Shown here: positions 10,961-45,013 of the stretch, piece by piece
Numbering within the stretch: position 1 is the first letter of the stretch
Layout of the letters: the number at the start of each line of letters is the position of its first letter
Origin: Haliotis rufescens
Lineage: Eukaryota
Reading direction: 5' to 3'
Assembly: GCF_023055435.1 (NCBI RefSeq)
Contig: NW_025963791.1
Coordinates: 11,532,001-11,596,000 of the forward strand
DNA: 64,000 nt
Made by a program: the position numbers and the translations under genes
The notes under the pieces: generated by a model
What the model was told of the DNA's origin: nothing
Databases searched by the model: none
What the model saw: the letters and a program-made list of their open reading frames with translations, nothing else

Positions 10961-11550
10961 GGCATAACTTGTAATGACGTTGTTAATTCTGTTGACAATA
11001 CAAGTATCTTCCTTAACATTGGTCCTGATTGTACGCGTGATGAAATGCATCTGCACTGTAAACAATGTGTTTAAAATTTTAAATAAATAAAATAAAACCG
11101 ATAAAACCATCCCATATTCATAAAAAATCTAAACACGTTTAGAAATGTGTTTTAATCCTAAACGGAGCACTCATTTGGTGTCTTCTATCTCACACTTTTA
11201 GGGTCTAAACACATGAAATGAGCTATCGTCTCACAGCCGGAACGCCGTCTGAACCCAACATCCTCGTAATCTAAACATGTTTAGAATTTGAACATGTCTT
11301 TCCTACAATCCTAATCCTAAACATGTTAAGATCCCCAAACGCGTCAAAGTTATGGGAGAAGGCAGTGTTAAGGTTTGTGTTTGTCCAACTCAAGTCTACA
11401 ACGATTTGGAAATTCTAGAAATTAAGGATTGTTCTTGGCTCCATTTGGGTTTTATTTTTTTATATTGTAGAAATATATATATTTTTAATTAAGAATTTAT
11501 TTCTGGGACTAAATGTCAGTCTAAAACGAATCATGCAATCAATATGTCGG

Positions 11551-11626
<76 letters not shown>

Positions 11627-12865
11627 CGGCGGTTAAAGTGTTGAATATTAAAATTGAGTATACAACCATTTAAAAAAAAAACTTATTCACAAAACTTGCA
11701 GGCTCACCTGACTGGTTGTTATTTGAGACCGGTTCAGTATAAATATCGTCGTGGTTATTAACGTCTGAAACATTAAATTGAGCATTATCTATATGGACTA
11801 GTCTGAACCAGACAAACTGGTTGATACTATGAACAACGCAATCGACACAAGTCACCATCCTGATCACCCGATCCAATTAAGTCGCCTCTTTCAACTCAAC
11901 ATATAATACAGGGCCTAATCTAACCCAGGTTCCATCATTGAGTGTTTTTAACAAACGTCTCTGCAAATACCCATATTATGTAAGGGGCGGACCATTTGAT
12001 ATTTAGGGGGAAGGCCCAGGTTATGTTTTTATTTTAGTTTTAGGGGCTGAGATTTTTCTTCTTAAACCTGAGCTGATATTTTTTTTATGGAACATTTCAA
12101 ATTCAACATATCGAAATAATGTTAAAATGTTCTCAATGTTCACTAAACTTAATCACTGCACAGAGGTAGGTGATTTTAAAACAGAACAATGAAAATAGCA
12201 GTATAATAAAGCATTTTTATACAATAAAAGACAATACGCAAGATCCAGCGACGTAAGGTGTTAACTGACATATGTAGATAGCGCTGGGGATTAAGGGTCC
12301 AGCTCGGAAGGGTCTTATGATAAGAGGGGATACACTGAATGTTTGTTGAATACATTAAACAGAAAAAGGAGATAGAACATCTGTGGACTTTGGAAACATA
12401 TTGAAACAATTAGGTATTATGGAGAAATTAAGTTTTAAAGAAACCTATTGAAGTGGATTGCACCATAACAATACCCCTGGACGTTGTGGAGCTTTTGTTC
12501 TCAAAATAGTGACAACATTGAAAGTACAAGTATTCAGTAAAATTAATTTCTCCAATCACAAAGATCAGTTTTTGCTTCAGATTGGTCAGGATTACGGTTG
12601 GTTGGTTGGTTTGTTGTTTACGCCGCACTCAGCAATATTCCAGCTATATGACGGCGGTCTGTAAATCATCGAGTCTGGACCAGACAATCCAGTGATTCAT
12701 ATCATGAGCATCGATCCGAGCAATCGGGATCGATGACCTGCATCAACCAAGTCAGCGAGCCTGACCACCCGATCCCGTTAGTCGCCTCTTACGACAAGCA
12801 TAGTCGCCTTTTACGGCAAGCATGGGATGCTGAAGACCTATTCGACCCCGGATCTTCACAGGTCT

Positions 12866-21964: not shown

Positions 21965-24569
21965 ACATAAAGAAAGACTGAGCAATATTTCCTTCAACAC
22001 CGCACGTCACTACTATGACGCCATATCGCTCATTGTGACACACAAGATATGACGTCACATAGTATACAGTAAAGCGCCACATTTCAAGGGCTCTGTTGTC
22101 CACTAAACTTGAAATACATTCTCTTTGTAGAGTATTTTAGCGAGGTTTCTGTATTTCAACGCATCCTTTAAAGATTATAATAACCGCAACTTTGCATTTA
22201 GTTACCTATAATATAGTCATTTAAAAATACAAAACCCATTTAATGCGATCTAACGTGTTTAACGTTGGCGACACTTAACGCTGTTTTTTGTTTTTTTTCA
22301 TATTTCAAATGATGTTCAGTGTTCCATTCATATAACTTTCACCGCTATTTTGCCTTTTTTGCCATATGGAATCTGTCTAGGAGAGGAGAATGGTCTTAGG
22401 ACTGTATCAAATTTTGCTAACACCCCTCTTCGCTGTGACATTATTTTATGACCCCACCCCCACGCACACACACGCCAACTCGACCACTAAAATCTCAATA
22501 GGTCTACCTACATTTTAACCAACCTAATCTACAGATTTCAAATCGGCAGGTAGGGGTACTCAGGGTGTTGTAAATAGAGCGACAAACACTTTCCATAAGC
22601 TATAGAAATCTATGCCAAAAGCAGATTCGATTGTACAATTCCGACTATATCATGAGCCTGTGTTTATGAATCACTATCAAATAGTAATGATACCAGGTGT
22701 TCGCGAAAAAGTGAGCGTTGCCTGCCCCACCGATGGCACCGTCACAAACACATGCAAAAACAAGTCAATTGTTCACCTGAAAAAAAAAACACGGGAAGAA
22801 ATAGTATAAGTCAAAATAGGGAATTGAATCGGACATATTTTTTTTCACTGATGCGTCAAATTTGGAAATATCCTCCACATGTCTACCATAAAACGTTTTG
22901 AAAGCTTTACTGAGGTCTTGAATGCTGTAACTTGATCAAACAACTGAGCAAGTGTTGTAACCCATTGTCGTTAAGTCTGTTTGCTTGGTCACCCTTCGAA
23001 ATGAGCAGAATATATTCTTGTCTCAGTTTCCTGCACAACAGGAGAAGTGATAAGAAAAGTGTAATAAATCTAGGTCAGCCCAAGACGTGGGTCGTATTAT
23101 CTTAAAAAACAGTCTAATGTGTAGTATAGTATAAAACATTGACACTTAAAGAAATAAAGTTTACTTTTCCTGACCCCTTACGGTAAGAGGTGTATAGGCT
23201 CTCGTTTCACTCGGGCTATATTATAAGTGACCACATAGTGTGACTGATGTTAAAAGAATGTTTCAAATAAACGAGATGTCATACCATAGACTTGATATGA
23301 CAGGCTGTAACGTTCACAAAACGTCTTGTCCAGATTGCTGACGAGAATATTCTTTGAGATTTTCAAAAGAAATATCTAACACCTTCAAAATATTTCTTTC
23401 TAAAGTTTACAAGTCTTGTATTGTTTAGAACAGAATATAAGACACAATTACCAGCATGGAGTAACTGAGTTATTTTCTAATAAACAAAAGGATATACATT
23501 ATTGTTCAATGGACTTCCCAGTTGGCAATTAATAGCAACATACTGGGGTTTGTCCGAGGTGCTATTAATAGCCAACTGGGTATTCCATGGAACTTTCAAG
23601 ACTTCATACCCGGTGTGTTCTGTTCGCAGAAGTAACAAAACGACCGGGATGCATGCAGGCATGTGGATGCAGCTAATTATATTATATGCAAATCCATAAA
23701 AGATATTACGGAATTAAGTGAAGGTTTATAGATATTAATATTAATCTAGGTTTTCTTTGATTAAAACATGGCAGGCTGATAAGGAATGATTATACATTCC
23801 AGGGATGTGGGGATTTCTTTTCATGCTAATTCAACACGGGTTCTCTTTTCTCCCTGCTACACACATGCTAATGATAGTTTTCCCGATATCCGTACCCCTT
23901 TGGGTAATATTCTCTCAACAACAATGTGTGGTAAACTTCGGAACAGAGAATACAATATGGCGCGTGAAATCAGCTTTACGCGTGTGACGTTTATGAGGCA
24001 GATCGTCATAAAAGAAGCAAAAGTCATCAGAATCTCACCTGTCAATCTAGCTCAACCTCCAGTTCTGAAATCTGTTGTTGATGACCACTCTATTTCACGA
24101 CACAGACGAAGGGCAACTTAAGTAGAGCACGGAGATGATTGTGTTTATTCCAAGGCAAGATAATGTGAACTCACCCCTTCTCTCTTCTTTCTGAACGTGT
24201 ATATCTCTATCTGTTCAAGCATGGGCAGCCATGCGTGCGTCTTCTTTGTGGCGTTTGAAAAGGAGACGGGCACGTTCTGCATGAGGTCTTACATAAAGAT
24301 AGGGGTGGGGGTGGGGGTGGGGGTGGGGGTGGAGAGTGGGAATGGTGAAGGTGATGGGTGGGATTGTGGATGGATGTTTTTTTTCAGGATTTCCAGAAAA
24401 CCATATATTATCATTGGTTCGGTTAGTTCCCTAAATTAGATTGGTTTATGGATAGTGTCGTGCTTTCCAAGACAAATAAGACAAATTATAACCATTGCAG
24501 CTAAGTGTAACACTATTTTCCAGGGCATTATCATTTGCAGAAGCCATCGGCTTTACATTACCCATTACA

Positions 24570-25245
24570 TAACACACACGCCAACACGCCCATACATACA
24601 CACACGCCCACACACATATACACATACATACACACACGCCCACACACATTTACACATACATATACACACGCCCACATATACAAACACGCCCACACATACA
24701 CACACGCCCTTACACATGCAAACACGTCCACACATACAAACACGCCCACACATACAAACACGCCCATACACACACACGCCCACACATGCACACACGCCAA
24801 CACATACAAACATGCCAAAACACATACACACACGCCCACGATACCCATGCATGCATGCCAACACGCCCTCACACACACACACTTACACATACACGCACGC
24901 ACCACCACCCTCCCTCACACACGCACGCTCGCACGCACACATACACGCACGCACCACCATCCTTACACGCGCACGCTCGCATGCACACATACACGCACGC
25001 ACCACCACCCTCCCTCACACACGCACGCTCGCACGCACACATACACGCACGCACCACCATCCTTACACGCGCACGCTCGCATGCACACATACACGCACGC
25101 ACCACCACCCTCCCTCACACACGCACGCTCGCACGCACACATACACGCACGCACCACCACCCTCCCTCACACACGCACGCTCGCACGCACCACCACCATC
25201 CTTACACACGCACGCTCGCACGCACATACACATGCCCACGCACAA
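24570..25245. repeat. Complex CA-rich micro/minisatellite
   Basis: CACACGCC/CACATA units, then ~110-bp higher-order units. A related tract lies at 27660-27810. Confidence 0.9.
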
Positions 25246-26340
25246 GCGTTAGCTTCGGGAATGTTACCCTGAGTCAATTTATGTTATTATCATGATTTGG
25301 ATGATTCTAAAACTTGTTTTCTTATGAATTGTTTCTTTCAACTTAAGTTGCACTATTTATACCTTATTCTGTGTAACATTTTACCTACTATAGGGTCTAC
25401 TGGATTTTAGCCTGTTAAGCTAATAACGATGAAGAGAGATACGCAAATAGTATTACGAGATAAACTGACAGTGTCGCAGCATGCTATATTTACAACCCAC
25501 TTGCCCGACAAGCGAGTTTTAGTGGACTTACGTGTTAGCAACAACAATGCCTACTAGTAGATGTAAGGGATCACAGTCGTGTATAACATCGGAATTAGCT
25601 GTGCATAGGTATGACCCTTAGTCGTTGCAGCATCTCATGATCGTTGCTTGGTGACATAGATTCCTACCTAGTGAACCAAAGTAATAAAGTGATTCACCAA
25701 CAAGATCTGTGTAACTCACTTACTCAGTCGCTTGTATTTTGCAACTGTGTTAAGTAGGAAGAAAGCAATGCTTGTTTGTTAAAAATGTTTATTCAATGTA
25801 AAATGTACATAATATTCATTATAAATTTTAAGTTTCTCTTTTCATGTTGGTTCCCCACATGGGTACAATGTGTGAAGCCCATTTCTGGTGTCCCCCGACT
25901 TGATATTGCTGGAATATAGCTAAAGGCGGTGTTAAGACATACTCACTCACTCTTTTTGTGTTTACAAGTTAAATTGAAGTTCAATCAAAAAATGACGATG
26001 GCCCCAAACGTATGTCTGAATGACTTCAATATAAGGAATTGTTTACATGTTGCGAAGTTTTAAATATGTATGTATATGCATGTGCATCAAATTGGTTGCA
26101 GCCTTCTCGACGTACAAGAAAAAATATCAACGGTCATCGTTTCCGGTTTTTACTTGGACAACAAATAAGATGATGGACAAAGACATAATGTCCTATCATT
26201 GGCAAACTGTTGTTAATTGGGAATAATTTATTGTGGCCTAACCAGACAACCATGAAATATCGTATTTTAGTTAGTTTAAGAATTTTCCACAGAGAACAGC
26301 CACTTACAAGTTCAAAGAGTTCCGTGAGGTAATACATGTA

Positions 26341-27405: not shown

Positions 27406-29677
27406 TTACTGCGCCGGCAGACTTTCTCTCCTCGCTTCCGGCACTGCCCTCAAGTACATTCCTGTAGAGTAGAGAACATGCTTATAGTTATATTTTCTAG
27501 TGGTTTGCACTTTGTATGAAGACATTATTAACGCAGCATTGGGGGTTCAACTCTGGATATATACAGCTACATTTATCGCACTTTCGTAAAATGGCAATTC
27601 GCAAGCTATAATCAACTGACAAAATCCAGACAATTTAAGGTCAAAATACTCTGTGGCCTCTCCATACACACATGCCTATACACATACAAACACGCCCACA
27701 CGCCCCCCCCCCCCCCTTCCACACACACGCCCACACATACACACACACACACACGCTCACACATACACACATGCCTATACACAAACACACACGCCCACAC
27801 ATACACCATCTAGAAAAAACTGAAAGATAAGGTGGTTCTGAAAAATCAGACAGGTACCCTAATAATCGAAATAAGAAATATACCTGAATGTCATTAATCC
27901 AATATGAACACGGCATATAATTATATTAAAAAATAGAATCGTTCAAACAGAAGGCGACTAAAATTGCGTTTACAATACTGTGTGCAGCCCCCCTCTGCAC
28001 CAAATGAACATTTTGATATGTTTGTTCTTTATTACATAACTTTACAAGTAACGTCAACGAAACTGTTTCGACAAACTGTGCAAACCTTTTTGGCCACAAC
28101 AAATCCGCTAAGTGATCTGGAACGTCTTTTCTGTGTTACCATTGTCTAAGGTATTTTTTGGACGTTCTCAATTGTAACGTGCGGATGATGTAGACATGTA
28201 TACTTTCCCTTCATCAATAATCATCCGTCCGTGCGCTGTATTCTAGTAACGATCTCTGGGCCCACTTGCACAAAGCGATCTTAGCGCTAAGATGATCTTA
28301 ACTCCCATACTTCAGCATAGGCTTACAATAGTCTTAGCGCTAAGATCGCTTTGTGCAAGTGGGCCCTGGTATGGCCTGCACAGTTCCACATCTTTTTTTA
28401 TTTTTTTGTTTTGTTTTTGTATTTATGATTTTTTTTTCACATCCATGATCTACTCACCTCTGTCCTCTGAGGCAGACAGGACATCAATGGAGTCATAATC
28501 TAAAAATAACATGTACATAATAAAATATCAAGAATTACGCTTAAGAATATGGTAAACTGTCTGCTGTTGTCAACTGTTTGTATAATTTACCTTCAGTACA
28601 TTGAGAGAGAATCCGTACTCATTAACAGAGATACAGTGATCTGTCTCAAGATCCCACTGATGGTTCATATGAAATGCATTCGTGGTATGCGGACCGGAAC
28701 TATGGTACAGTAGACAGAGTGCCTGCACGGAGAGCGCAAGATTGGTGTTCGATCCCTGGCCGCGTCATACCAATATAGGTTGATAGATGGTACTTGTTGC
28801 CCTGGCTGGTGCTTGACATTGAGGGTACAATACAAAGAGTGGCTCGTAGTCATGTCACATTTGCAGCATAAGGTAAGTTGGCTAGCACTATACTAACGGC
28901 TAAATCCCGGATACATACACACGCATGCAGTAAAATCCTCTTCAACTCGACGGTAACTCGACATTTCACCCCACATCATGGTATGTTACCATAACTCTAC
29001 ACTCACATCACAATGCTCATTGCATATTGACCGCCTCCGTGGTTTAATGGTAGAGCGTCCGCCCGGAGAGCGGAAGGACCGGCGTTCGATCCCCAGCCGC
29101 GTCATACCAAAAGACGTTAAAAGATGGTACTTGTTGTTCCCCTGTCTGGCGCTCGGCATTAAGGGGCTAAAACAAGGACTGGTCGGCTCGGAGTCAGTAT
29201 ACTGTGTCTGAGTGGGGTATTCATGTTAAACTGCGGCATGGTATCACAGTGTGCTAGCACTATAAATCGGCATCAGTCCGGACTAGTACAAGCAGCCACA
29301 CACACATACACGTGCATGCACGTCGCTATATAAGTGCAATAATCTTGGACGCGACGTAAAACCCTATTTCACCTCACCTCACCTCATTGCATATTAAGTT
29401 AGGCGGCTGTTAAATGTTTGATAAACTGTTAAACACGCTCTCGACGAACATTTCTGACATGCTAAATGTATTACCTGTATCTGCTTTATCTCCACTGTTG
29501 GGCGCCCCTTCAAACAAACGTTAAATAATAAAGAATCATTGGTCACCAACCCCCAAATATGACATATATGACTGGTACGAAATTCAGGTAAGGCAGATTA
29601 AATACAACAATGCAGAAAGCATGTCATTTTAAGTCCCGAAAGATCTTGAAACAGACAGTAACACGCCTGAAATTTCA

Positions 29678-29709
<32 letters not shown>

Positions 29710-30273
29710 CACATACGTCGGTACACACTCCTTATACACTACAGCTATAACAGAACCATATATCCAGTCACCTTTATAGGACAAGACAGCACTTTCAGTC
29801 TGATGACATTAACCATGGCCTCAGCCATGAACATAGAGAATGTTACAAATATGTAGTTGCTATCGCTTACTATTCGTAAAGTCAATGTCTAAAGTATAAC
29901 GTGTAGTTGTTAAGCCCTTTCTATACCTGGCGATGCAACATCCTTAGATGATAGAAGACGAATCTGAAGCTTCACTTGGAGTTTTACNNNNNNNNNNNNN
30001 NNNNNNNNNNNNNNNNNNNNNNNNNNNNNNNNNNNNNNNNNNNNNNNNNNNNNNNNNNNNNNNNNNNNNNNNNNNNNNNNNNNNNNNNNNNNNNNNNNNN
30101 NNNNNNNNNNNNNNNNNNNNNNNNNNNNNNNNNNNNNNNNNNNNNNNNNNNNNNNNNNNNNNNNNNNNNNNNNNNNNNNNNNNNNNNNNNNNNNNAGTGA
30201 GAGGGTGAGAGGGTGAGTGAGTGAGAGGGTGAGTGAGTGAGAGGGTGAGTGAGTGAGAGGGTGAGTGAGTGAG

Positions 30274-30311
<38 letters not shown>

Positions 30312-33300
30312 GACACGACCATGACGTATGACAGTTGTTGATTTGGTTGTGTATATTTCATATTCGTTTTCGCATGCGTTTGACCACATATTGCCAAAGT
30401 TTGTGCCATGTGTCATAATGTGATCTTTGGCGACCTTCACCTGGCTCCAAAACGTGATCACTACAAGATTTATGGTTTTCCAACCAGATATACTCCAGGT
30501 ATCATACAACGAAATTCTCACAGTGACCTTGACCTTTTAAAAACACCAAATCACACGTGGAATAATTCCCCAGGGTTGCATATGAGAAAACCAATATGGC
30601 AATGGACAAATTCGAGCAACATATCTACACTGTAGTATAATGTATAATATATGACAGGCCAAATTATATTTGCTAATGTGAGACATAAGTCCAAGTGATT
30701 TATATACATTTAAGCTGTGTACATTCCTCCCGTTAAACAGTACCCATATTTCCAGACAGCTAAAATGAGGTTCCCATTAAATAGCGATGAAAACTGTTAC
30801 CCCTTTGGCGTCTGTATTTTACACACATGACGATGACCGTCACAGCCAGAACAAGGATAGCTGCTCCTTCCCCTGCTAAAGCCGCCATCAGTTCAACAGA
30901 GATGCCGCTGACAATAGAAGACAACAATCTAGTGTCAGGGAGTGTCGTGCAATGCTGAGCCGGCCTGTAAACAACCTAAAGACCAGGCAAACAAGTTTAC
31001 GATAACATGAGATAAGGTCCGCTGCATCGGTGCGCGATGACACACAAATTACCTGGTCCTATAATGTCCAAAAAATGTTTAAATTACAGAGTGGAACAAT
31101 TTGAGCTGATTTACTGATGGAGTGAGTGAGTGAGTGGGTGGGTGAGTGAGTGAGTGAGTGAGTGAAGCCGCTTTGAAAATTCCAGTTATCGCCCTGAAGT
31201 GCCGAATGGGATGCAACTCTGCACAGCGAGTTGTGGCGCCGTAGACGACTGGGCCACAAGCGCCCCCTGTTTTCAGTCGAACAAAGATTTGAGTGACAGG
31301 GAAACAACAAAATAAGACATTTTGAGCTGATTAAGTGAAGTCATTAGTTGATAGTTCAAAACAACAAAGTAAAACATGTTGAGCTGATTAAGTGAAGTCA
31401 TTTGTTGATAGTTCAAAACAACAAAGTAAATCATTTGGAGCTGATTAAGTGAAGTCATTAGTTCATAGTTCAAAACAACAAAGTTACACATGTTCAGCTG
31501 ATTAAGTGAAGGGGCGGTCGGGTAGCCTAGTGGTTAAAGCGTTCGCTCGTCACGCCAAAGACCCGGGTTCGATTCCCGACATGGGTACAATGTGTGAAGC
31601 CCATTTCTGGTTTCCCCCATGCCGTGATATTGCAGGAATATTGCTAAAATCAGCGTAAAACCTTACTCACTCACTCACTCACTGATTAAGTGAAGTCCTT
31701 AGTTGATAGTTCAAAACAACAAAGTAAAACATTTGGAGCTGATTAAGTGAAGTCATCAATTGATAGTTCATAAAACAGATAGGGCAGGGTCATCAGTAAA
31801 TGCTATTTACCTCTGTTATCCAGGAATTATTTAGCAGTTTGTGTCGGTGTTGATCACAAATACAAGCTGTATCAAAGTTCAACTATCTATTTAAGAACAG
31901 TTCCCAATTCAATCACAGCTTACAACGTGTATATGATCCTGAATCAAAATTCGTTCTTAGATAATCACGAGGAACAGGACAGCAGAAAACGTAAAGACAG
32001 CTAAATGTAATCCTTATACCAGTCAAACGTACCTGGCCATACCCGCTGTTGTTTCAAATGTACACTTGTCGCACTCATATTGACTTGGGCAGTTTGCAGT
32101 GTAGGTAATTCTCAGGTCCTGTTCATCCATTTTGAAAGTGAAGACGTCCCCAGCGGCCATGCCAACCTACCCAAGAACATTATAAGCATCATCTATGAAA
32201 AAAGGCATTGAATGATGCATACATATGGAAGGGTGGTCACACAAGGTGGTGGATGGCAATGTACTTGAACACTATTTGTTCACCTTCTTTTCAAGGATTG
32301 AAAATAAAGACGCACAGTGTCTTTTTTGTTTTGTGAATTAATTTTATTTCAGTTCTTCAGCGGGAAAAACAAGTTCTCATGTCATCAATTTTACATGTAT
32401 TGACACCAGATGGAACTTTAAAACGTTGATATTCTTTTCAGATATAATAATACATATGGCCTAATTTCATTCCAGGTAACATAACCTCGTTAGGACATGT
32501 TTTCCAGTGGCCTAAAGTGAAACATACATTCCATTTATTGTACAATTTACAAGTGGTCACAATGTTTCCACTTTAATCTATAAAATATCTGATCAGCACG
32601 ATGTATTTCCTTCACAGTCGGAAAAGTATGAAACCCATTTCTGGTATCCCCCGCCGTGATATTGCTAGAATATTGCTAAAAGCGCATAAAAACACACTCA
32701 CTCACTACAGTAGGAAAAACAGTGAGCACAAAAAGTATATATTAACAAATCTGCGGTGAGATATACTTCTTTCACTTTTACCGAAGAGGTATAGATAATC
32801 AATTTCAGTTTTGCATAGAGTTCTTAAATACAATACAACGTCTGTCAACATCATCATCAGACATAGATGCTCGTGTAGATGGAGAAGTCGGGATTTATTT
32901 ATCAATTTTTTATCATAAGATCATCTGACAGATATAAGTTCATTAGATATTTGATTAGTTGATGTTACTGCTTGTGGAATTTTGAGATCCTTAGGCAGAA
33001 ATTGATATAAACGACATACACGCATAGAATACTTACGTCTTTGTATTCAAGGTCATCAGATCCAATTCCTGGAACTAGCTGAGAGATCCGAAATCCACTT
33101 GCACCATTTCCGCCCTCATCAAATACACGACGTTGTTTGCCGTCCCTGTAGACGTCCAGCTGAACATCTTTGGTGTAGCGGATCAGCTCAGAGGTTGAGT
33201 ATTCTGGACACTTTGTGGCAGTCCCTCGACAGACATGATGAAGGCTGCTTCTGAAACCTCGGACCAAGGCATACAAGGCAGTGGTAGCGAATGGGACCCA

Positions 33301-36300
33301 TGTGTCAATCTGATGGTGACTTGAGAGCAGTGAGGAAGTACATTCCTGTTTGTCCTTTTTCAGAAAACTGCCTGGAAAGAAACAGTTTGCCCTTTTCTCC
33401 AAAAATGGTCTCAGCCAGGGGTTTACATCGGAAGAGCTGCTGATATTGCGAAAATACTGTTCAAAATGTGGGTCAACTGGAAGATCCTGAGCCATGGTGA
33501 AGCTTCCTTTCAGGTTGTAGTTGCCTTTAATAACGTTAGTCCGTCTAGCCCAGCCCTCTCCAGATCCAAAGAAAATAAACTCTCCCAGTTTAATCTCTTC
33601 ACTGACAGCTGTCATCAGAGCTGGTGTGGTGTGTGATCGGGAAAACACAATCACCATTCTGGCTGCCCTAAACTGTCTCAGTTTATACACGATGCCCACA
33701 TATCGTTTTGGATCAATGTCTTCTTTCACTGGTACGCTTTGTGCTACACAAACTCCTGCCTTGTTAGCTCCTTCCAGGACAGAATCCCGACCAGACTGTC
33801 CATACGCCTCATCAGTGTACAACACCTGGATGTACTTGGCTCTGAGCTTCTTGGCTACCTTCATCATTGGTTGCACTTGGTCATCCAGTGATGATGCTGT
33901 TCTCATGAACGTTGGGTATTTGTTCCTCGCTCTTAACTTGGAACTAGTAGAGGCATAGGCTATAAACAGTTGGTCCAGTTGTTTCATTGTGGATGCTAGT
34001 GGAATGCTGATCGAACTCGCTAATGGCCCTATGTAGCCAATTACTTTGTCACTTATCGCTGAACTTTGGACCCCACCCCCGAGATGAAGTTCACCTTTAT
34101 GTAATTTCACAATTTTATCCCTAATTATCACAGGGTTGTTGCATGTGTCCAGCACAACCAACCCTATGGATGTGTTACCAAGAACTGATGGAAATTCTCC
34201 TGTTTTGTTGTTCACATCTTTTGTAGCAAACATCAAAGCCTCTGCAATGTCTACACCTATAGCTGACCTTAAGGGGCCACACCTGAAGACGTTTAGGGAG
34301 TCTCCATCAGTGCTTCGTCTGTTGTGTATGGGAACAAGAGCAACAACATAATAGTCCCCTTTAATGTGTATGATCTCCTCCAATGGGTCTTTAAGGCATT
34401 CTGGACAGTTGTATCCCTTGTGACAATTACCAGGAACTGGGCTGCCCTTTTTGCCAGATTTATCGAAGGATTGAATTTGATCAAGGGACAACTTCAGTGA
34501 TCCATTGAAAGAGCCAACCTGAAATGCAAAGAAAAATACTTTTGAACTGTTGTTAAATTACTTCACCTGTGTGCATTTAGCAAACATGTGGAAACGCGAA
34601 CTCAGCGGTACATCGGAGAAGATGTATATGGCACTATGACCTTTAAGAGTCATGCAATCTAACTGGTCCATAAGCAGTATCGAACCTTCTTGAGACCATA
34701 ATTTCTAGACCACAAGAGAAAACATTTATTTAGAAGCACTTCATTCACACACTGCCAAGATGGACAATTTTAAATACTGGTCTGACTTCATTAACGTTGC
34801 TAAACACTGTGTTACGTTTCCTAGAATATTCAAATTAAGCGTGGCTTTATATATCAGGCGGAAGACTTGACGAGCAAAGGCTGGTGTAAATGGCGGGTGC
34901 TACTGGTAGGGCAGGTAATGTTTACCATTTTCGCGAACACCTGGTGTCATAATTGATTTTCAGTGGTCCATTCATATAATTTTCACAGCTATTTTGTCCT
35001 TTACGCCCAATGGAATTTTCTTGCATTGAAAATTTATATTCCATTATGACCTACCTTATGAAAGTTAAATTCTGTATGATTCCTCTTGTAGTTGTATATT
35101 TCGTACAAGCTCTTCTCAGTGTACAGGTGCATCTCGCCTTTGCTGAAGGATATGTTTCCCCTTCCTGGAAATAAACTACCCATCAGATCTGAGGGTTTCA
35201 GTCTCAGCTTTTCAATTTCTGCAATTAAGGTTCCCTGTGATACGTCTCTCATGGCATTGCATATTGTGTTCCCTGCACCACAAGTCCGACTGATGACGTT
35301 CTTGAAGACCTGTGCCATCACACCAGTGGCTAGAACTGCATAGGAAATAAAGAGAGGTTGTTGGGTGATTTCATAGCTGTTGGACGAGTCACTCCAGCAC
35401 TTGATAATGTCAGTTTCTGGACGTAAATCGCATCCAGTCAAAGACCGGAAGTAAAGGGATAACCAATGGTTTTCTTTTGCTTCTTCACGGAATGTTGTTG
35501 CATTTTGAAACAGAGTGTTCCAGTGAGAGGTAAATTCAGGTATTGGTTCATACACTGGAGTCGGTAGAAGAAGCCCTTTTGCTCGATCAAATACATTATT
35601 CTGACCGTTTTGTAGATACGATGGTTCCAGTGCTAACGCCTCGGACACAATCATCTGAAACTGATCATTAAGTAGGTGTTCATCAAGGTATTCCAAAACT
35701 CGAGTGACAGTCTGTCTTCGTCCGAAGAACACCATCCCTGAAACAGGGCTTGACTTGATGTCCAACTTTTCTCGCAGGGAAACAATACTGCTTGTCGTAG
35801 TGATCATTTCAAATACAGGAATGCAGATTCCCCGACGTTCAGATTCTACTTTCAAAGCTGTTGCACCTTCAATGCTATAGGAATCATTCTCGTAGCTAAT
35901 GGCAACATAGTTCCATTTCAACTGTTGAATTAGCTGCAGCATGACCTGCGAAGATATGATAGATATGTTCTCAAGAGATGCACCTCAGGGGAATGATAAT
36001 AATTAATGCAGTAACCTGCGGCATTAATAATAGGGCCAACAGATATGATATACAGAGGACACAGCGTGATTTAACATGACAAGAGTCTTGAATTGAAATG
36101 AGTTTCAGATTGGCTTTAAAATGCTTGTCTTGTCTTACCTCCACTTGGACATTGTCTGCCACTATGACACGGTACAGATTTTTGTAGATAGTTTTATCGG
36201 TGAGACTGGCGGCTGTGGCTGAGTAGCTGACCTGTAGCAGACGATCGTCTACCGGAAGTGAGCTTAGCAGACGTGACACTGGCTGAGTTTCTGATGTGGT

Positions 36301-39300
36301 TTCTGGACCAAGAATACCTGAAAATCATCAGGAAAATACGCTATCAAGATACCCGATCATTCAATATCCTCTGTGTGAAAGTTCTTCAGGAAATATACTG
36401 TCTAGTACACTAGATTTCAAGTCAGTGTGTAAAGTTGTCATTGATAGAATGCAAAAACTGAAAATAGGAACAGATTTGGAATAAACCCATTCAAAATCTG
36501 GTTGCCCTTCAGGAATAGTATGTAGGCTTTCCAAATGGCAAGGCCTCCGATTACATAACCCTTATGTGCCAGCATCACTATATTAATTATTTGATTAAAG
36601 AGCTTGGTCTAAGTGACATATCAAATCATGCCACCTGTATGACCTCAAAAGACTCCATTCCAAAGCTCCATAAAACTAAAGGAAGATATCGCAGGGTCCA
36701 GGAAACGTACCACTAAATCTCTGCCTCAACGATCATCTATGAGGAAGGATTTGGCTGGTTGGTTTGTTGTTTAACGCCGCACTCAGCAATATTCTAGCTA
36801 TATGACGGCGGTCTGTGTACATAATCGAGTCTGGACCAGACAATCCAGTGATTGATATCATGAACATCGATCCAGGCAATTGGGATCAATGACATGCTTC
36901 AACCAAGTCAGCGAGTCTGACCACCCGATCCCGTTAGTCGCCTTGTACGACAAGCATAGTCACCTTTTACGTCAAGCATGGATTATAAGAAAGGACTTTT
37001 TTATATTCACAGAAAGTATTTGTGACAAGTGGAATTAATAAATACCATGTAGTTTCTATAAAACGCAAAGGATTTTTGTTTGACTTCTTACAAGCTCAGA
37101 AAAGAACCAGGTTCAATTCTGTCAAAACATTTGATTTTTCAACTTTGTACACCACTATCCCACATGAGAAACGTAAGGAAGGAAAAACTTTATTCTTATT
37201 TCATGTACTAAGTCACTATTGTGACCGCCTCCGTGGTCTAGTGGTAGAGCGTCGGCCCGGAGAGCGGAAGGTCCGGGGTTCGATCCCCGGGCGCGTCATA
37301 CCAAAGGACGTTAACAGATGGTACTTGGTGTTACCCTGTCTGGCGCTCGGCATTAAGGGGCTACAACAAGGACTGGTCGGCTCGGAGTCAGTATACTGTG
37401 TCTGAGTGGGGTATTCATGTTAAACTGCAGCATGGTATCTCAGTGTGCTAGCACTATAAATCGGCATCAGTCCGGACTAGTACAAGCATGCACATCGCTA
37501 TATAAGTGCAATAATCTTGGACGCGACGTTAAACCCAATTTCACCTCACCTCACTAAGTCCATTGTTACTTCTTCATTAGTTTCATTATCAAGTGATATA
37601 GTTAGTTGTTGTGATGTTTCAGAAAGGTCTTTTTTCCCACGTTCCTTTTTCTTTGGCAGACGCGTACGAAATTGTCCTATCGTGAATCATTAGTATTACT
37701 ACTTCCCAAAACATCTGATTTACCCACCTGAACTAGAAATGAAGGAGACCAGTTTCATGTTTACATCTGCGCACAAAACTTCAGAATGATAACAAGAGTG
37801 CTCTGAGAGCACAACATCCCCCGCATGAATTTTTTTAACGAGTCAAATGAAGCTCCGTAAAACAGGGGCATCTTGTGTGTAGAGTGTGAAGAATTGATTT
37901 CACAAGCTTAGTACCCTCTCTCACAATTAGGCAAATGAAGCTCCGTAAAACAGGGGCAGTAACTCTGTCAAAATTAGTCGAAATGAAACGGGACTGCGAT
38001 ATGCGTATCATCAACATGTCAACATCTTGTGTGTAGAGTGTCAGGGATATTCTCTGGAAACTGTAGGAGGAGTTGATTTCACAAGCTTAGTACCCTCTCT
38101 CACAATTAGGCAAATGTAGCTCCGTAAAACAGGGGCAGTAACTCTGTCAAAATTAGTCGAAATGAAACGGGACTGGGATATGCGTATCATCAACATGGCG
38201 ACATCTTGTGTGTAGAGTGTCAGGGATATTCTCTGGAAACTGTAGGAGGAGTTGATTTCACAGGCTTAGTACCCTCTGTGGGACGAAAAGACGGACAGAC
38301 AGACAGACGGACGGACGGACGGACTGCGCCACGACATAATCCCCCTGCGGCCATTCTGGCCCGGGGGGGGGGGGGAGGGATGACTTCAGCTTTCCAATAG
38401 TCAACTTGCCTTTACATCCATATTCCAGCAGCTCAAGTCTTTGGTGTCTACATTTCACAACGTTTGAGGTACGATTGAGCATACTCTACGAATATTTCAA
38501 AGAACGTCGTACGACTCTATCTCAAAAGTTGTTTGATCAATGTTTTAAGAAGGCCCCATGAAAGCTTTTTAATGGTAGATATGTAGCGGGCATGTCCGAT
38601 GCAATTCCCTATTTTGACTTGTGCCTAATGTTCCCGTGTCTTTTTCAGGTGAACAGTTTACTTGCTTTTACATGTGGTTGTGACGGGTGCCACCGGTGGG
38701 GAAGGATAAGCTCACCTTTTTGCGAACACCTGGCCCCGGGATCATGAAACTTACTTAAGACTATATTTTGTCTTAACTCTTAAGACAAAATTCGTGCTAA
38801 GCAAAATTTGAGCTAAGACCACTTTCATGATCCCGGGGCCAGGTATCACTATTCACTCACCCAGACAGTGTGATTAAAGCTGGCATCCATACAAACTGCT
38901 ATTTCTGAACAGTATGAACAAAGAAGTTGCCATACAAATTGTTTGTTATTAACAGTGTAAATAAAGAAGTTGCCATCCATACAAAGTGCCTTTTATTGAC
39001 AGTGTAAATAAAGAAGTTGCCATACAAAGTGTTTGTTATTAACAGTGTAAATAAAGAAGTTGCCGTCTATACAATGTTCTTGTTATTAACAGTGTAAATA
39101 AAGAAGTTGCCATCCATACAAAGTGCCTTTTATTGACAGTGTAAATAAAGAAGTTGCCATACAAAGTGTTTGTTATAAACAGTGTAAATAAAGAAGTTGC
39201 CGTCCATATAATGTTTTTGTTATTGACAGTGTAAATAAAGAAGTTGCCATCCATACAAAGTGCCTTTTATTGACAGTGTAAATAAAGAAGTTGCCATCCA

Positions 39301-42300
39301 TACAAAGTGCTTTTTATTAACAGTGTAAATAAAGAAGTTGCCATCCATACAAAGTGCCTTTTATTGACAGTGTAAATAAAGAAGTTGCCATACAAAGTGT
39401 TTGTTATTAACAGTGTAAATAAAGAAGTTGCCGTCTATACAATGTTCTTGTTATTAACAGTGTAAATAAAGAAGTTGCCATCCATACAAAGTGCCTTTTA
39501 TTGACAGTGTAAATAAAGAAGTTGCCATCCATACAAAGTGCCTTTTATTGACAGTGTAAATAAAGAAGTTGCCATACAAAGTGTTTGTTATAAACAGTGT
39601 AAATAAAGAAGTTGCCGTCCATATAATGTTTTTGTTATTGACAGTGTAAATAAAGAAGTTGCCATCCATACAAAGTGCCTTTTATTGACAGTGTAAATAA
39701 AGAAGTTGCCATTCAAAGTGTTTGTTATTAACAGTGTAAATAAAGAAGTTGCCATCCATACAAAGTGCCTTTTATTGACAGTGTAAATAAAGAAGTTGCA
39801 GTCCATACAAAGTGCCTTTTATTGACAGTGTAAATAAAGAAGTTGCCATCCATACAAAGTGCTTTTTATTAACAGTGTAAATAAAGAAGTTGCCATCCAT
39901 ACAAAGTGCCTTTTATTGACAGTGTAAATAAAGAAGTTGCCATACAAAGTGTTTGTTATAAACAGTGTAAATAAAGAAGTTGCAGTCCATACAATGTTTT
40001 TGTTATTGACAGTGTAAATAAAGAAGTTGCCATCCATACAAAGTGCCTTTTATTGACAGTGTAAATAAAGAAGTTGCCATCCATACAAAGTGCCTTTTAT
40101 TGACAGTGTAAATAAAGAAGCTGCCATCCATACAATGTTCTTGTTATTAACAGTGTAAATAAAGAAGTAACCGTCCATACAAAGTACTTGTTGTCAACAG
40201 GGTAAATATAGACGATGTCGTTCATATGAAGTGTTTGCTACTTGCTAATTTGTCTCAGATTTGTCCACATTATGCTGAAATGTCATTTGTCCTCATTAAG
40301 TAATCAGGTAGAGGAAAACTGATAATAGTTACATTCAAAAGTGTAAGCGGTGTCATATTATATATCCCTGTATTGTATGGTGACTAGGTATGTTTTCAGC
40401 TCCACTTGCAAAACCAGACATTACAGTAAAGTACGGTTATAACGAACTCAAAGGGACTACTAATTTTAGTTCGTTATAGTGAGTTAGTGAGTATGGTTAT
40501 ACACCGCTTTTAGCAATAGTCCAGCAATATCACGGCGGGGGACACCAGAATTGGGCTTCACACATTGTACCCATGTCGGGATTCGACCCCGGGTCTTCGG
40601 CGTGAGGAGCGAACGCTTTAACCACTAGGCTACCCGACCGCCCCTTAGTTCGTTATAACCGTAGTTCGTTATAAGCATATATACCGCATAACTACAGCAA
40701 TTAGTCGGGACCAAAAAAGTAAGTTCGTTATATCCGTATGCTCGTTATAAGCGTGTTCGTTAAAACCGTAGTTTACTGTATTTTGATTAAAACTATGAAC
40801 CTAAATAGTATAAAAAAAAGCAAACATCTTACAACAATCTATTTTCTTTTGGTTGAAGACAATTATTTTATTTTTGCCAAAGTCTGCAGCATAATTATTT
40901 TTTCAAGCCTTTTCTTGGACAATCTGACTATCAGAATATCCTCAGACTAATTCCTGTATGTGCGTCGCTGTTATTAATTCATCGAGTAAACACACATATT
41001 TTTCCTGTCGCTGAATAGGAAGTATAAAGTGTATTCAGAAAATATCGTAGTTTAAAGCAAGCATTTGTGTCAACACGTTCATGAATTCGAGATTACTGCT
41101 TTTGTGTGTTTTGCGCTAAAGCTTAGAACCAGGATATTAATCGTTTGCTTTTTGTGTCCGTGATTGTGTCTCATTCATTTTTAAAAAAAGATTAAGTTGC
41201 TTAAATTTGGAATAGGTCAACTTTGTTAATTTATAAGCTCCCGTATAAATATTTCTTTGTACATTTTCAGGTCTTTGAAGAGGAATATCGCACAATACAT
41301 ATATTTCCTTGTCAAGTATTATCGTGCCTGGTCTTGATTCTTTATGACGATGAATAATGACTCTACGAAAGCCTAATGGTGCCACTCTGGTAGCATATTT
41401 TTTCTTAAATCGGTAGTTCTCGTTATTTGAATCATTTGTTTACTTTCTCGAAATTTCGATTTTCTCCCCACGTTATTTCGATTGTAACTTCGTAATTTCT
41501 AATATTTTCTCGCTACTTCGATTTTTTCTCGTTATTTCGTTTATTTTCTCGTTGCTGTAGGCTACCTGACCTTCCTCGTTGCTTCGAGTTTTTTCTTGTT
41601 ATTTCGATTATTTTCTCGTTATTTCAAAAACTTACAATTTCGATTATTATGTCGTTATTTCGAATATTTTCTCTTTATTTCAAAAACTCGAAATTACGAG
41701 AAAATAATTTAAATAACGAGGATAAATTTGACATTTCGAGTTCTCGAAATAACGAGAAAGTAATTGAAATTGCGAGAAAAAAAAGTCGAAATGACGAGAA
41801 AATAATTGAAATAACGAAATATTTCGATTTAGGAAAAATATAATTATGCTACCAAAGTGGCACCATTAGGCTTTCGTATGATTCAGGCATGGCAAACCAC
41901 AACGTCCCGAAGACACAGTAAATATAGCACCCTGCAATTGACCCAGGGTCTTGGCGTGACGAGGTCTATTATAAATTACTGTAGGCTACCTGACCGTCCT
42001 CGAAACTGTTAAAATAGCTTTAGGAGCCCCCGGTACCTACCATAGAGAAATGATGTTTCATTGCGGGAAGCTGTCTCTATCAGTTCCAATGTCTGTTTCA
42101 CGGCGAGAGCTGGCAGAGAACACGTCTTGTAGGCCATCAAACCTATGTTAACATCGAAGAAAAAACATATGCTATAGTTATATAACATCGAAGAAAACAC
42201 ATATGATATCTACAGCATCGAAGAAAACACATATTCTATAGTTATACAACATCGAAGAACAAATATATGATATCTACAGCATCGAAGAAAACACATGTGC

Positions 42301-45013
42301 TAAAGTTATATAACATCGAAGAAAACACATATGATATCTACAGCATCGAAGAAAACACATATTCTATAGTTATACAACATCGAAGAACAAATATATCATA
42401 TCTACAGCATCGAAGAAAACACATGTGCTAAAGTTATACAACATCGAAGAAAACACATATGATATCTACAGCATCGAAGAAAACACATATTCTATAGTTA
42501 TACAAAATCGAAGAACAAATATATATCATATCTACAGCATCGAAGAAAACACATGTGCTAAAGTTATATAACATCGAAGAAAACACATATGCTATAGTTA
42601 TACAACATCGAACAACAAATATATGATATCTACAACATCGAAGAAAACACATGTGCTATAGTTATACAACATCGAAGAACAAATATATGCTATAGTTATA
42701 CAACATCGAACAACAAATATATGATATCTACAGCATCGAAGAAAACACATATTCTATAGTTATACAACATCGAAGAACAAATATATCATATCTACAGCAT
42801 CGAAGAAAACACATGTGCTAAAGTTATATAACATCGAAGAAAACACATATGCTATAGTTATACAACATCGAACAACAAATATATGATATCTACAACATCG
42901 AAGAAAACACATGTGCTATAGTTATACAACATCGAAGAACAAATATATGCTATAGTTATACAACATCGAACAACAAATATATGATATCTACAGCATCGAA
43001 GAAAACACATATTCTATAGTTATACAACATCGAAGAACAAATATATCATATCTACAGCATCGAAGAAAACACATGTGCTAAAGTTATATAACATCGAAGA
43101 AAACACATATGCTATAGTTATACAACATCGAACAACAAATATATGATATCTACAACATCGAAGAAAATACATATGCTATAGTTATACGACATCGAAGAAC
43201 AAATATATGCTATAGTTACACAACATCGAAGAAAACACATATGCTATAGTTATACAACATCGAAGAAAAATGATATACTCCAGTAAAACAACATCAAAGT
43301 AAACACATTCTACAATTGTTACGCCGTATTTACCCGCGGGGTGGTGGGGGTGGGGGTGGGGGTAGGGGTGGAGTGGGTATATAGATTCCCAGTAACCCAT
43401 GCTTGTCATGCGAGTAAGTGCAGTCCTGCTTGGTGACTTGTGTGTCGTCGTGTCCTATTACCCATGCTTTGTATCATCTGTTAGAGAGGTACAGACTCGA
43501 TATTAGTTAGGGGCACTCACTCACTCACTCACTATCACACTGTTACGTCGTAGTCAGTAATAGAACAGCTATATCACGGTACACGTGGATGTAATTGAAT
43601 CTGGATCAGACAAACCTGTGATCGATGTACATGGACGATGGCACATATTCAGTCACAGCTGAAAACCTAGCATCCCCGTGCAAATATCCACTAGATTCTC
43701 GTTTAACATGCATGTAGTGACAACACAATGATCGGTTGCTCAGGCCTGCTGATGTGGTCGATGTTTTCTCGTGGTGGACTGAAGTCCCCGCGTTTCGTCA
43801 GAAGCCCCGTGGCATTTATCAATTAGGCTGAGTTAACCACAAAAGAAATGTTTGGGCCGAGACATAAAAACACAAACACGAACCCCCTCCAACCCCATGA
43901 GCGAAATATTTCTTCAGTGGTTCTCTTTACCATCTTCCCGAGGCAAGGGAATTAACTGACTATAAAAGTCCAGTTTCCACCCTTGCCGAACTTGCTGGAA
44001 TTCTGGAGTTACATTTTGGCTGGACTAACGAGTCTATGTACAGTCCAATCAGAATCGCGTAACGAACGACATGGATTTCAAGTTGCAGATTTCGGTCGAC
44101 TGCAAGATTTGCAAAGCATGCGTATCGCCAACTGGGCGTCGACAGATATTTTGCGATTTATTTCATGTTTTTAATCAAGGTGCTCAAGTGATTTGATTCA
44201 CTTCGCGGGGTACGGCCCGTTATATTACAATATAGAAGAGACATACCTCGTAATAGCCACTGGTGGCGCTACGATCGACCCCAGAAATTCCAGCCTAGTT
44301 CGGCAAGGGTGGAAACTGGACTTTTATAGTCAGTTAACTCCCTTGCCTCGGGAAGATGCTCTTTACGTGTAAGTAGCACAATCTCTGCACTTGTAATTCA
44401 AGAACCTGCTGTCTCACAGTAAACGTTTTAGTGATGACACCAACACGAACGTCAAGATCAAAATCATTATTGTCACTAAGTGATGGTGATTGGTTTGACG
44501 CCGCTTTGAACTGCATTCCAGTTATATCATGGTGTGTCAAACTAAGTGAGGGAGGCCTCGGACGTTTACCACTTCACCGCGAGCACGTGTATGGTGCTGA
44601 CACACCTAGAAACATAATCAAGGAGAACAAGGATTCGAACCCACGATTATAGGTTATAATGGACGCAATTTCTTCACAGCTAATTAAGACGAATGGGATG
44701 AAGGCCTGGGGGTCAATTAGTTGCATCATGCATCAGCTAAGATTCAGGAAATAATTAGCATGTTATACTTCTACCTACCTAGGGTGATCCCTGGGATGAA
44801 GTTCTGGCGATTGAGTTGCTTGAGGGTCCATCGAACGGCTTCGTGAATTTGAACAGAGACACGGTCGATGCCGGCACACTGGCCGCCTTCACTTGACTGT
44901 ATGGAGAACAACCCTCCCATCAGGATATCCCCCGGCAACGTGACGACGTTCTGTGACTTCCCCGGCACCACGATGACCAGCACCGACAGACAGATTGATG
45001 CAAGGAGTGTCAT
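27406..45013 (-). CDS. Receptor copy B: single-pass membrane protein with two tandem Venus flytrap (ANF_receptor/mGluR-like) domains and a Tyr-motif tail, ~1086 aa, 10 coding exons
   Basis: Hand-spliced exons, all GT-AG and phase-consistent: 45013-44779, 42142-42041, 36317-36139, 35945-35055, 34518-33037, 32166-32033, 30907-30801 (TM: [33 protein letters not shown]), 29507-29475, 28499-28458, 27461-27406 (TAA). Sum 3261 nt = 1087 codons. mGluR-like motifs: [77 protein letters not shown]. The three small tail exons are less certain than the ectodomain exons. Confidence 0.85.
28259..28365. mobile_element. PIF/Harbinger-type MITE
   Basis: ~34-bp perfect TIR ggcccacttgcacaaagcgatcttagcgctaaga with a 3-bp CTG TSD. 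Similar elements at 38732-38840 and (degenerate) ~2870-2975. Confidence 0.8.
29029..29382 (+). mobile_element. SINE family 2 full copy
   Basis: TSD ctcattgcatatt. An older diverged copy lies immediately upstream (~28690-28975). Confidence 0.9.
29988..30195. other. Assembly gap (N run) next to (GTGA/GAGG)/(GT)n microsatellite 30196-30310
   Basis: The run of n lies in the copy B intron after the TM exon. Confidence 0.99.
31302..31770. repeat. 57-bp minisatellite, ~5-6 copies
   Basis: gctgattaagtgaagtca recurs at 31326, 31383, 31440 and onward. Confidence 0.9.
31511..31681 (+). mobile_element. SINE family 1 inserted in 57-bp minisatellite
   Basis: Full copy; TSD ctgattaagtgaa. Confidence 0.9.
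37223..37552 (+). mobile_element. SINE family 2 full copy
   Basis: Matches the 1979 and 29029 copies. Further copies at ~45590-45800, 49070-49460, 53560-53860, 62437-62740 and 63423-63770. Confidence 0.88.
37791..38380 (+). mobile_element. Helentron-associated (HINE/pearl-like) element
   Basis: Starts AACAAGAG, has ~180-bp internal tandem repeats, a (GACA/GACG)n microsatellite and a terminal palindrome/G-run. A similar element lies at ~5755-6400. Confidence 0.65.
38865..40200. repeat. 43/47-bp minisatellite, ~28 copies
   Basis: Unit acagtgtaaataaagaagttgccatccatacaaagtgccttttattg and variants. Confidence 0.95.
40479..40644 (-). mobile_element. SINE family 1 inserted in a MITE
   Basis: Full copy; TSD ttagttcgttata at 40466-40478 and 40645-40657. 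Confidence 0.9.
41366..41876. mobile_element. Foldback-type MITE, TA-flanked, internal inverted TTTCTCGTTATTTCG subrepeats
   Basis: TIR cgaaagcctaatggtgccact.tggtagcata. A structurally similar element lies at 1234-1433. Confidence 0.8.
42150..43270. repeat. 30/34-bp minisatellite with ~260-bp higher-order period, abutting copy B exon 2 acceptor
   Basis: catcgaagaaaacacat recurs at 30/34-nt spacing. A higher-order block recurs at 42469, 42731 and 42991. Confidence 0.92.
43931..44358. mobile_element. Non-autonomous DNA transposon with ~62-bp TIRs and 8-bp TSD (hAT or P-like)
   Basis: TIR catcttcccgaggcaaggga...cttgccgaact; TSD ctctttac at 43923-43930 and 44359-44366. Confidence 0.88.

Follow-up and report, generated by a model that had tools for sequence, protein, structure and literature searches.

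A tandem Venus-flytrap receptor gene of Haliotis rufescens with a single membrane helix and a tyrosine-motif tail

Venus-flytrap domains (VFTs) are the ligand sensors of metabotropic glutamate receptors (mGluRs), GABA-B receptors, CaSR, and taste and pheromone receptors, and to our knowledge they are coupled to few outputs, namely a seven-transmembrane (7TM) domain, an ion channel, a guanylyl cyclase, or a tyrosine kinase. The locus described here raises the question of what a receptor does when it carries two VFTs in one chain and ends in a single helix with a short tail. It lies in a stretch of 64,000 nucleotides of the abalone Haliotis rufescens (assembly GCF_023055435.1, contig NW_025963791.1, forward strand), referred to below as the window, which covers positions 11532001-11596000 of the contig labeled C13 in the genome scans; C290, C583, and C585 are other contigs of the same assembly. 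The gene in question, LOC124141188 (copy B), is followed by a tandem paralogue, LOC124141164 (copy A). An original prediction, made from the DNA letters alone, had described copy B as a tandem-VFT ectodomain derived from an mGluR and wired to a non-catalytic tail that recruits SH2 proteins. The analysis presented here bears out the architecture, and for the output it offers docking on a phosphorylated tail tyrosine as the best single reading, held tentatively.

The copy B gene is intact and encodes a type I membrane receptor. Read junction by junction on the minus strand (45013-27406), its ten exons form a single open frame with canonical AG/GT signals at all internal splice sites and compatible phases, and the product is identical, letter for letter, to the H. 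rufescens protein XP_048248200.1 (1086 residues; P0001), which was retrieved by an HMMER search of the protein library with exon 4. A frame count on the joined exons, with exon 1b left out of that count, gave a single terminal stop and no other. When XP_048248200.1 was compared with the window by tblastn, it matched at 100% in each of the ten exons and within the exon limits, including the transmembrane exon and the tail exons of 33, 42, and 56 nucleotides (nt); the originally proposed junctions 32033>30907>29507>28499>27461 and the tail are therefore those of the NCBI model. Exon 1b is readily overlooked, because skipping its 102 nt keeps the frame. The last exon is also present in H. cracherodii, and the B-type model of H. 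rubra has a different end. Intron 1 of copy B contains two minisatellites, at 38877-40212 (a 47-nt unit repeated 29 times) and at 42150-43308 (a 34/64-nt unit repeated 18-36 times), the second of which stops 8 bases short of the exon 1b acceptor.

The layout that had been foreseen, with signal peptide, VFT1, VFT2, one helix, KYRR stop-transfer, and tail, was found with every element in its place, both cysteine motifs and the tail included. As anticipated, Pfam recognized two ANF_receptor stretches with the related Peripla_BP_6 and nothing further in P0001 and in its exons; 7tm_3 was not among the matches, NCD3G (PF07562) had none in the copy B exons or in P0001, and no kinase or cyclase domain was found in P0001. 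The expected single transmembrane segment was equally evident, since hydropathy gave two hydrophobic segments, the signal peptide (peak at residues 1-19) and one segment after VFT2, where the AlphaFold2 model has a helix (1012-1041). Comparisons with solved structures placed VFT2 nearest to mGluR5 and mGluR1 (E about 6e-41), and at E<=1e-5 its relatives were mGluRs first, followed by CaSR and taste receptors; VFT1 is far more diverged in exon 3, with mGluR2 as its best solved relative (E=1.2e-4). The AlphaFold2 model of P0001, built on a 42-sequence family alignment, reached a mean predicted local distance difference test score (pLDDT) of 84.9 and a predicted template-modelling score (pTM) of 0.72. 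It contains two bilobed alpha/beta domains besides the helix, its pLDDT is below 50 from residue 1040 on, and a Foldseek search of the PDB returned mGluR ectodomains at the top (target TM-score up to 0.89). A C-x5-C-x2-C knot stands behind each VFT, and its cysteines are invariant in 42 family members, as are all three of the second knot in exon 5. The tail of 49 residues is disordered in the model and contains no catalytic domain. An mGluR-like tandem-VFT receptor with one transmembrane helix and a short non-catalytic tail is borne out by Pfam, structure searches, and AlphaFold2 alike. Compared with G protein-coupled receptors (GPCRs) of class C, for which the ectodomain of mGluR1/5 (PDB 1EWK, 6N4Y) was the reference, copy B shares the VFT fold and sequence, largely the pocket signature, and a cysteine linker after each VFT; however, it has two VFTs per chain, C-x5-C-x2-C in place of the nine-cysteine NCD3G, and one helix in place of 7tm_3. 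A homodimer prediction with two VFT2 segments (residues 500-975) scored 0.01, which speaks neither for nor against a dimer. A Pfam match of the transmembrane exon to DAP10 (E=0.043) lay below the cut-off and was taken as chance.

Both VFTs keep the residues by which mGluRs hold the alpha-amino-acid moiety, which suggests that they close on an amino-acid-type ligand. The positions were mapped by motif equivalence to mGluR, with an alignment for VFT2 alone, to mGluR5, and the contacts looked for were S165, T188, D208, Y236, and D318 of mGluR1. Among 42 family members, these positions are kept in VFT1 as S/T (37), T (36), D (36), Y (34), and E/D (36), and in VFT2 as S (38), T/S (38), D (30), Y (42), and E/D (39). 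The two positions that presumably correspond to the side-chain contacts Y74 and R78 (mGluR1 numbering) are both Ile in the alignment of VFT2 with mGluR5. Judged from these residues, an amino-acid-like ligand other than glutamate is a reasonable guess for copy B.

The same architecture, which the original prediction had proposed to seek in mollusc proteomes, is found in both gastropods and bivalves. The exon-4 search returned 1851 proteins at E<=0.001, and among the best 150 of these about 50 cluster representatives have two VFTs, one hydrophobic segment near residue 1000, and a tail whose length ranges from 19 to about 600 residues. Within the named subset of representatives all are molluscs, namely the gastropods Haliotis, Patella, Nucella, and Batillaria and the bivalves Solemya, Potamilus, Saccostrea, and Pinctada. 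Copy B has the features that define this family, a d1-type and a d2-type VFT, C-x5-C-x2-C after each, and then one transmembrane helix. The long tails of the family (up to about 600 residues) gave no Pfam match, kinase families included. One member, P0014 (1099 residues), lies on a pair of Logan contigs, 3671 and 3712 nt long, in which there is no space for introns; at least one organism therefore appears to carry the double-VFT layout on a full transcript. The abalone genome itself contains another five or six double-VFT genes in tandem (C583:8044193-8142393), which are 37-46% identical in VFT2 and one of which has stops, and one more at C585:589229-593243; the genome scan found no 7tm_3 near any of them. 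Family members are named 'uncharacterized' or 'hypothetical' throughout. An expected mislabeling as mGluR-like thus applies to the ESM Atlas, with its automatic cluster name 'Metabotropic glutamate receptor 6/7/8', but not to RefSeq, which says 'uncharacterized'.

A previously described family would have spoken against the novelty claimed for copy B. The proteins are catalogued in RefSeq and UniProt, and a full-text search, with subscription journals outside its coverage, found no published description of tandem-VFT single-pass animal receptors or of these loci. The family thus comprises VFT receptors of undescribed architecture and output whose proteins are already catalogued and uncharacterised. 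The literature found on tandem VFTs concerned only bacterial BvgS/EvgS and similar proteins, sensor kinases with tandem periplasmic VFTs of the SBP_bac_3 type and a histidine kinase output (PMC4352136); tandem VFTs on a single-pass-like stalk are a likeness of layout to copy B, with no homology. Venus kinase receptors, which are present in molluscs, have one class-C-like VFT and an intracellular tyrosine kinase of their own (PMC3703292, PMC4026697). Copy B resembles them in its single pass, its class-C-like VFTs, and the tyrosine phosphorylation chemistry proposed for it, but it has two VFTs and no kinase domain.

The tails of 50 representatives cannot be aligned, and one motif, D-x-Y-[LI]-x-P, is common to them. 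Its core Y-[IL]-x-P was counted at 37 sites and is present in 31 of the 50 tails, where shuffling predicts 2.7 tails and yields a mean of 2.8 and a maximum of 9 sites, a 13-fold enrichment across the family that is indicative and not a probability, because the shuffle control ignores the relatedness of the members. Y-[IL] of any kind is present in 46 of the 50 tails, and Y-L-T-A/V variants are seen in several of the tails that lack the strict motif. Around the core, D stands at -2 in 14 of the 37 sites, D or P at -1, and Thr or His is common at +2. An acidic tyrosine motif with fixed residues at +1 and +3 has the look of kinase substrate and SH2 sites. The tail of copy B carries Y-D-S-I and then Y-L-R-A followed by V-P, the latter being its only, variant, form of D-x-Y-[LI]-x-P, and A-type tails carry Y-x-E-P and Y-L-H/R-P, the second of these representing the family motif in copy A and its A-type orthologues. 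The Y-D-S-I block of H. rufescens agrees with that of the H. rubra B-type at 14 of 15 positions, and the block is also kept in H. cracherodii, while the adjoining juxtamembrane residues have diverged; this speaks for exon 8 being real coding sequence under constraint. Shuffling of the 50 tails left the immunoreceptor tyrosine-based switch (ITSM; 7 sites, 6.0 expected) and inhibitory (ITIM; 20 sites, 14.9 expected) motifs at chance level, and activation motif (ITAM) patterns were not enriched in the family tails. T-D-Y-D-S-I of copy B fits an ITSM and S-A-Y-D-S-I of H. rubra an ITIM, both patterns that are at chance family-wide, and the ITAM pattern (YxxL/I, 6-12 residues, YxxL/I) fails in copy B, where Y-D-S-I is followed after 11 residues by Y-L-R-A with Ala at the second +3 position. 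What stands of the predicted tyrosine-motif tail is hence a constrained tyrosine motif, with Y-D-S-I kept in Haliotis and Y-[IL]-x-P enriched in the family, but not the immunoreceptor patterns, and SH2-recruiting, immunoreceptor-style signaling by the tail is pure inference.

Phosphotyrosine docking is preferred over the other readings because the acidic tyrosine motif alone is conserved in tails of very different length. Each VFT would probably close on a small ligand, an amino acid or something similar, and closure would alter the arrangement of a dimer, by analogy with other VFT receptors. A cytosolic tyrosine kinase would then phosphorylate the tail tyrosine, the sole conserved cytoplasmic read-out, and SH2 or PTB proteins would dock on the phosphorylated residue. 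For this purpose Y-D-S-I and the degenerate Y-L-R-A would serve in copy B, and Y-x-E-P and Y-L-H-P in tails of the copy A type. Several points weigh against this scheme in addition to the limit on the enrichment given above. The strict Y-[IL]-x-P is absent from copy B, the family motif fits no immunoreceptor consensus, and the Haliotis A/B clade has Leu at the D208-like position of VFT2. Moreover, the pocket residues were placed on the mGluR1 numbering by motif equivalence, and the assignment of Y-[IL]-x-P to SH2 classes of the PLC-gamma, SHP-2, or Crk/Nck type is tentative. Phosphotyrosine signaling is thus plausible but unproven.

The main rival, and a serious one despite being on the unlikely side, is that copy B acts as an accessory ligand-binding subunit that would join a 7TM class C GPCR in the membrane and pass ligand occupancy to it in trans, the counterpart of what multi-VFT class C GPCRs achieve in cis through their N-terminal VFTs, its tail motif serving assembly, trafficking, or regulation. 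This possibility is opened by the origin of the ectodomain, which is homologous to the N-terminal modules of multi-VFT class C GPCRs. Unrooted domain trees were built from 166 VFT domains cut from the matches (FastTree on all, IQ-TREE quick on 62). In these, VFT1 falls together with the first VFT of proteins combining 4-5 VFTs with 7tm_3 (FastTree Shimodaira-Hasegawa (SH)-like support 96, 45 rows; IQ-TREE SH-like approximate likelihood ratio test (SH-aLRT) 98, 16 rows), and VFT2 forms its own clade (97, 57 rows, and 92, 12 rows, respectively) as sister to the inner VFTs d2-d4 of the multi-VFT proteins (joint support 98 and 83). The membrane-proximal last VFT of those proteins (d5) and the ordinary single-VFT class C receptors, mGluR-like rows among them, fall outside. 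According to the trees, what multi-VFT class C GPCRs carry as their N-terminal module stands here, as the double-VFT ectodomain, on a helix of its own; being unrooted, the trees are compatible with either truncation or fusion.

Multi-VFT class C GPCRs, with 2-5 VFTs and 7tm_3, occur in bivalves, gastropods, octopus, a nemertean, a crinoid, a starfish, and amphioxus, so that the original remark that receptors usually have one VFT understates what the databases hold. They are unnamed or automatically named, such as XP_074641006.1 (Tubulanus), XP_059178375.1 (Physella), and XP_035691717.1 (Branchiostoma), all 'uncharacterized', and no published discussion of them was found in the full-text search, subscription journals being outside its coverage. 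The abalone genome contains them as well, at C290:3616909-3682558 (3.61-3.68 Mb), where serial VFT-sized exons are followed by 7tm_3 exons at 3626042, 3658612, and 3681731, and class C receptors are obligate dimers and often heteromers, all of which favors an accessory role. Copy B and these receptors thus share phylum, genome, and their most closely related VFTs; however, the multi-VFT receptors keep the membrane-proximal VFT and the 7TM domain, whereas copy B ends in one helix and a tyrosine-motif tail. Genomic linkage is also lacking: a six-frame scan of the whole 1.33-Gb assembly gave 34 matches to 7tm_3 (PF00003), none of them on contig C13; class C GPCRs of this genome are located, for example, on C290, C68, and C357. 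Fusion elsewhere is a mere hint of interaction, and the accessory role leaves unexplained why an acidic tyrosine motif is the sole conserved cytoplasmic feature in tails that range from 19 to about 600 residues.

It is less probable, and on balance doubtful, that copy B is a ligand sink or endocytic receptor comparable to NPR-C (NPR3), which would clear its ligand or take it up for nutrient sensing and be internalized through a tyrosine sorting signal without relaying anything. NPR-C also has an ANF_receptor ectodomain, a single transmembrane helix, and a short non-catalytic tail like that of copy B, and the feature look-alikes in the ESM Atlas include an NPR-3 cluster (score 0.93). In addition, Y-D-S-I of copy B, which is kept in the B-type orthologues, fits the YxxPhi signal of AP-2 cargo. 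However, YxxPhi shows no family-wide enrichment in the 50 tails (66 sites against 68.4 expected from shuffling), the conserved motif has Pro and not a Phi residue at +3 and is no AP-2 signal, and the tail is several hundred residues long in many members. Among solved structures, the best relatives are mGluRs and not natriuretic peptide receptors, and NPR-C itself binds peptides with one VFT and has another tail motif. Copy B, with two VFTs nearer to mGluRs, accordingly lacks the single NPR-type ANF_receptor of that class.

As predicted, copy A has the exon layout of copy B, but the two last exons, which had been called homologous, are alike only in Y-L-x-x-V and the final AQ-stop, and copy A has a premature stop, where a TAC codon of copy B exon 2 is replaced by TAA (17852-17850). 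The RefSeq model of copy A (P0160, 928 residues) begins only with the exon 3 Met and consequently has no signal peptide. Pseudogene, null allele, and assembly error are possible readings of copy A. In H. rufescens, exons 1-4 of the two copies are 95-98% identical in nucleotides and 92-95% in residues (exons 3-4), and the A and B types of H. rubra are 88-97% identical in residues over exons 1-4. Residue identity between A and B falls to 53% in exon 1b (38% in H. rubra), 43% in exon 5 (49%), 50% in the transmembrane exon (40%), and 26% in the tail (23%). Between H. rufescens A and the H. rubra A type it is 77% in exon 5, 59% in the transmembrane exon, and 52% in the tail, so that these three regions follow the A/B type across Haliotis species, as exon 1b appears to do. 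The introns of the two copies do not align. Given this mosaic of identities and the non-aligning introns, the ligand-binding exons have been homogenized between A and B while the transmembrane and tail regions stayed distinct, a pattern that resembles gene conversion limited to those ligand-binding exons. In both A and B types of all four Haliotis species seen, the transmembrane helix has a Glu close to its outer end, which is absent from the other members whose transmembrane segments were compared. The tail region of copy A (9401-12860) contains a tandem duplication of about 2.3 kb that doubles the 57-nt Y-T-E-P exon, both copies of which are included in the RefSeq protein, as well as a retroelement fragment (10289-10514, 12598-12825).

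Paired immunoreceptors of the KIR, SIRP, and Ly49 type have non-catalytic tails with tyrosine motifs. The A/B mosaic has their pattern, with tandem copies whose ectodomains are nearly identical within a species and whose transmembrane and tail regions differ, and T-D-Y-D-S-I formally fits an ITSM; this likeness is an observation and not a proof of that function. Their ectodomains, in contrast, are of Ig or lectin type and not VFTs, ITIM and ITSM are not enriched here, and Y-D-S-I-x11-Y-L-R-A departs from the ITAM. By this analogy it is conceivable, if improbable, that molluscs use a third class of VFT output, in which amino-acid-type ligands, a double VFT, and a docking tyrosine are combined and the tandem A/B genes form a paired-receptor system with distinct or opposite signals. 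Gene conversion would then keep the A and B ectodomains alike, and the transmembrane and tail regions would remain type-specific (Y-x-E-P/Y-L-H-P against Y-D-S-I/Y-L-R-A). If so, the amino-acid chemoreceptors that have yet to be identified in abalone could be double-VFT receptors, with a possible link to the larval settlement cues reportedly studied by the Morse laboratory.

The original prediction had named splicing into 7TM or kinase exons, possibly within the assembly gap, among the results that would overturn it. The Ns at 29988-30195 adjoin a CA/CTCA-type microsatellite in the intron between exons 6 and 7, and the exons on either side join in frame. The orthologue P0151 from the separate assembly of H. 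cracherodii has the same residues over this junction with nothing inserted, and the gap, estimated at 208 bases, is too small for a 7TM domain, which takes about 750 nt. It is thus very improbable that copy B results from an artefact of annotation or assembly or is in decay, its transcript running into hidden 7TM or other exons or the gene being a pseudogene like copy A: the position of the gap and the premature stop of copy A favor it, but the C-terminus and the length after VFT2 are the same in H. cracherodii, the single-helix layout recurs in about 50 gastropod and bivalve representatives, one member lies on transcript-length contigs, the entire contig has no 7tm_3 match, and the frame is open across 1086 codons.

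The coordinates of both genes are collected in Table 1. Elsewhere in the window, an open frame at 54097-54471 on the plus strand matches SRP68 (Pfam E=2.6e-11) and is probably one exon of a neighboring gene for signal recognition particle 68. Long open frames at 3971-4786, 6641-8116, and 24455-25295 are products of minisatellites or CA-rich microsatellites and not genes, their Pfam matches being below the cut-off and lacking any accepted stretch. Many elements resembling tRNA-derived short interspersed nuclear elements lie in introns and flanks (31510-31676, 32623-32706, 29029-29387, 37223-37554, and others), and most of the likeness that the window's two halves show outside exons is due to these copies.

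Table 1. Exons of copies B and A and the assembly gap, in window coordinates (e, exon).
Feature	Position	Strand	Basis
Copy B e1: start codon, signal peptide, start of VFT1	44779..45013	-	ATG at 45013; GT donor after 44779; P0001 residues 1-79
Copy B e1b (102 nt): first strand-helix unit, VFT1 lobe 1	42041..42142	-	AG/GT; P0001 residues 80-113
Copy B e2: VFT1 segment with G-P-E-T-T-S and S-A-T motifs	36139..36317	-	100% to P0001; weak ANF_receptor match
Copy B e3: remainder of VFT1	35055..35945	-	ANF_receptor E=2.1e-13
Copy B e4: end of VFT1 module, first C-x5-C-x2-C knot, entire VFT2	33037..34518	-	ANF_receptor E=2.8e-31
Copy B e5: final strands of VFT2 module, second C-x5-C-x2-C knot	32033..32166	-	100% to P0001 residues 964-1007
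Copy B e6: single transmembrane helix (Glu near outer end), then KYRR stop-transfer	30801..30907	-	Hydropathy peak 2.33; model helix 1012-1041
Assembly gap (N) in e6/e7 intron	29988..30195	.	Microsatellite alongside
Copy B e7 (33 nt): juxtamembrane tail	29475..29507	-	AG/GT; 100% to P0001 residues 1044-1054
Copy B e8 (42 nt): conserved Y-D-S-I tail motif	28458..28499	-	Block kept in H. cracherodii and H. rubra B-type
Copy B e9: Y-L-R-A variant of family motif, then TAA at 27408-27406	27406..27461	-	tblastn
Copy A, tandem paralogue, LOC124141164	8731..20817	-	Downstream of copy B
Copy A e1	~20817-20583	-	
Copy A e1b	~18444-18331	-	
Copy A e2, TAA stop at 17852-17850	~17998-17815	-	
Copy A e3	17214-16324	-	
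Copy A e4	16152-14671	-	
Copy A e5	~14341-14216	-	
Copy A transmembrane exon	~13676-13596	-	
Copy A 57-nt Y-T-E-P exon, duplicated	near 11741 and 9434	-	
Copy A last exon with Y-L-H-P	8781-8731	-	

The double-VFT family is phylum-wide, tandem-expanded, and conserved, and it would represent either a new signaling output of VFTs or a new accessory subunit of class C GPCRs. It also draws attention to the multi-VFT class C GPCRs, with up to five VFTs, that are widespread in invertebrates. For the biology of abalone, the genes described here provide concrete candidate receptors for amino-acid cues.

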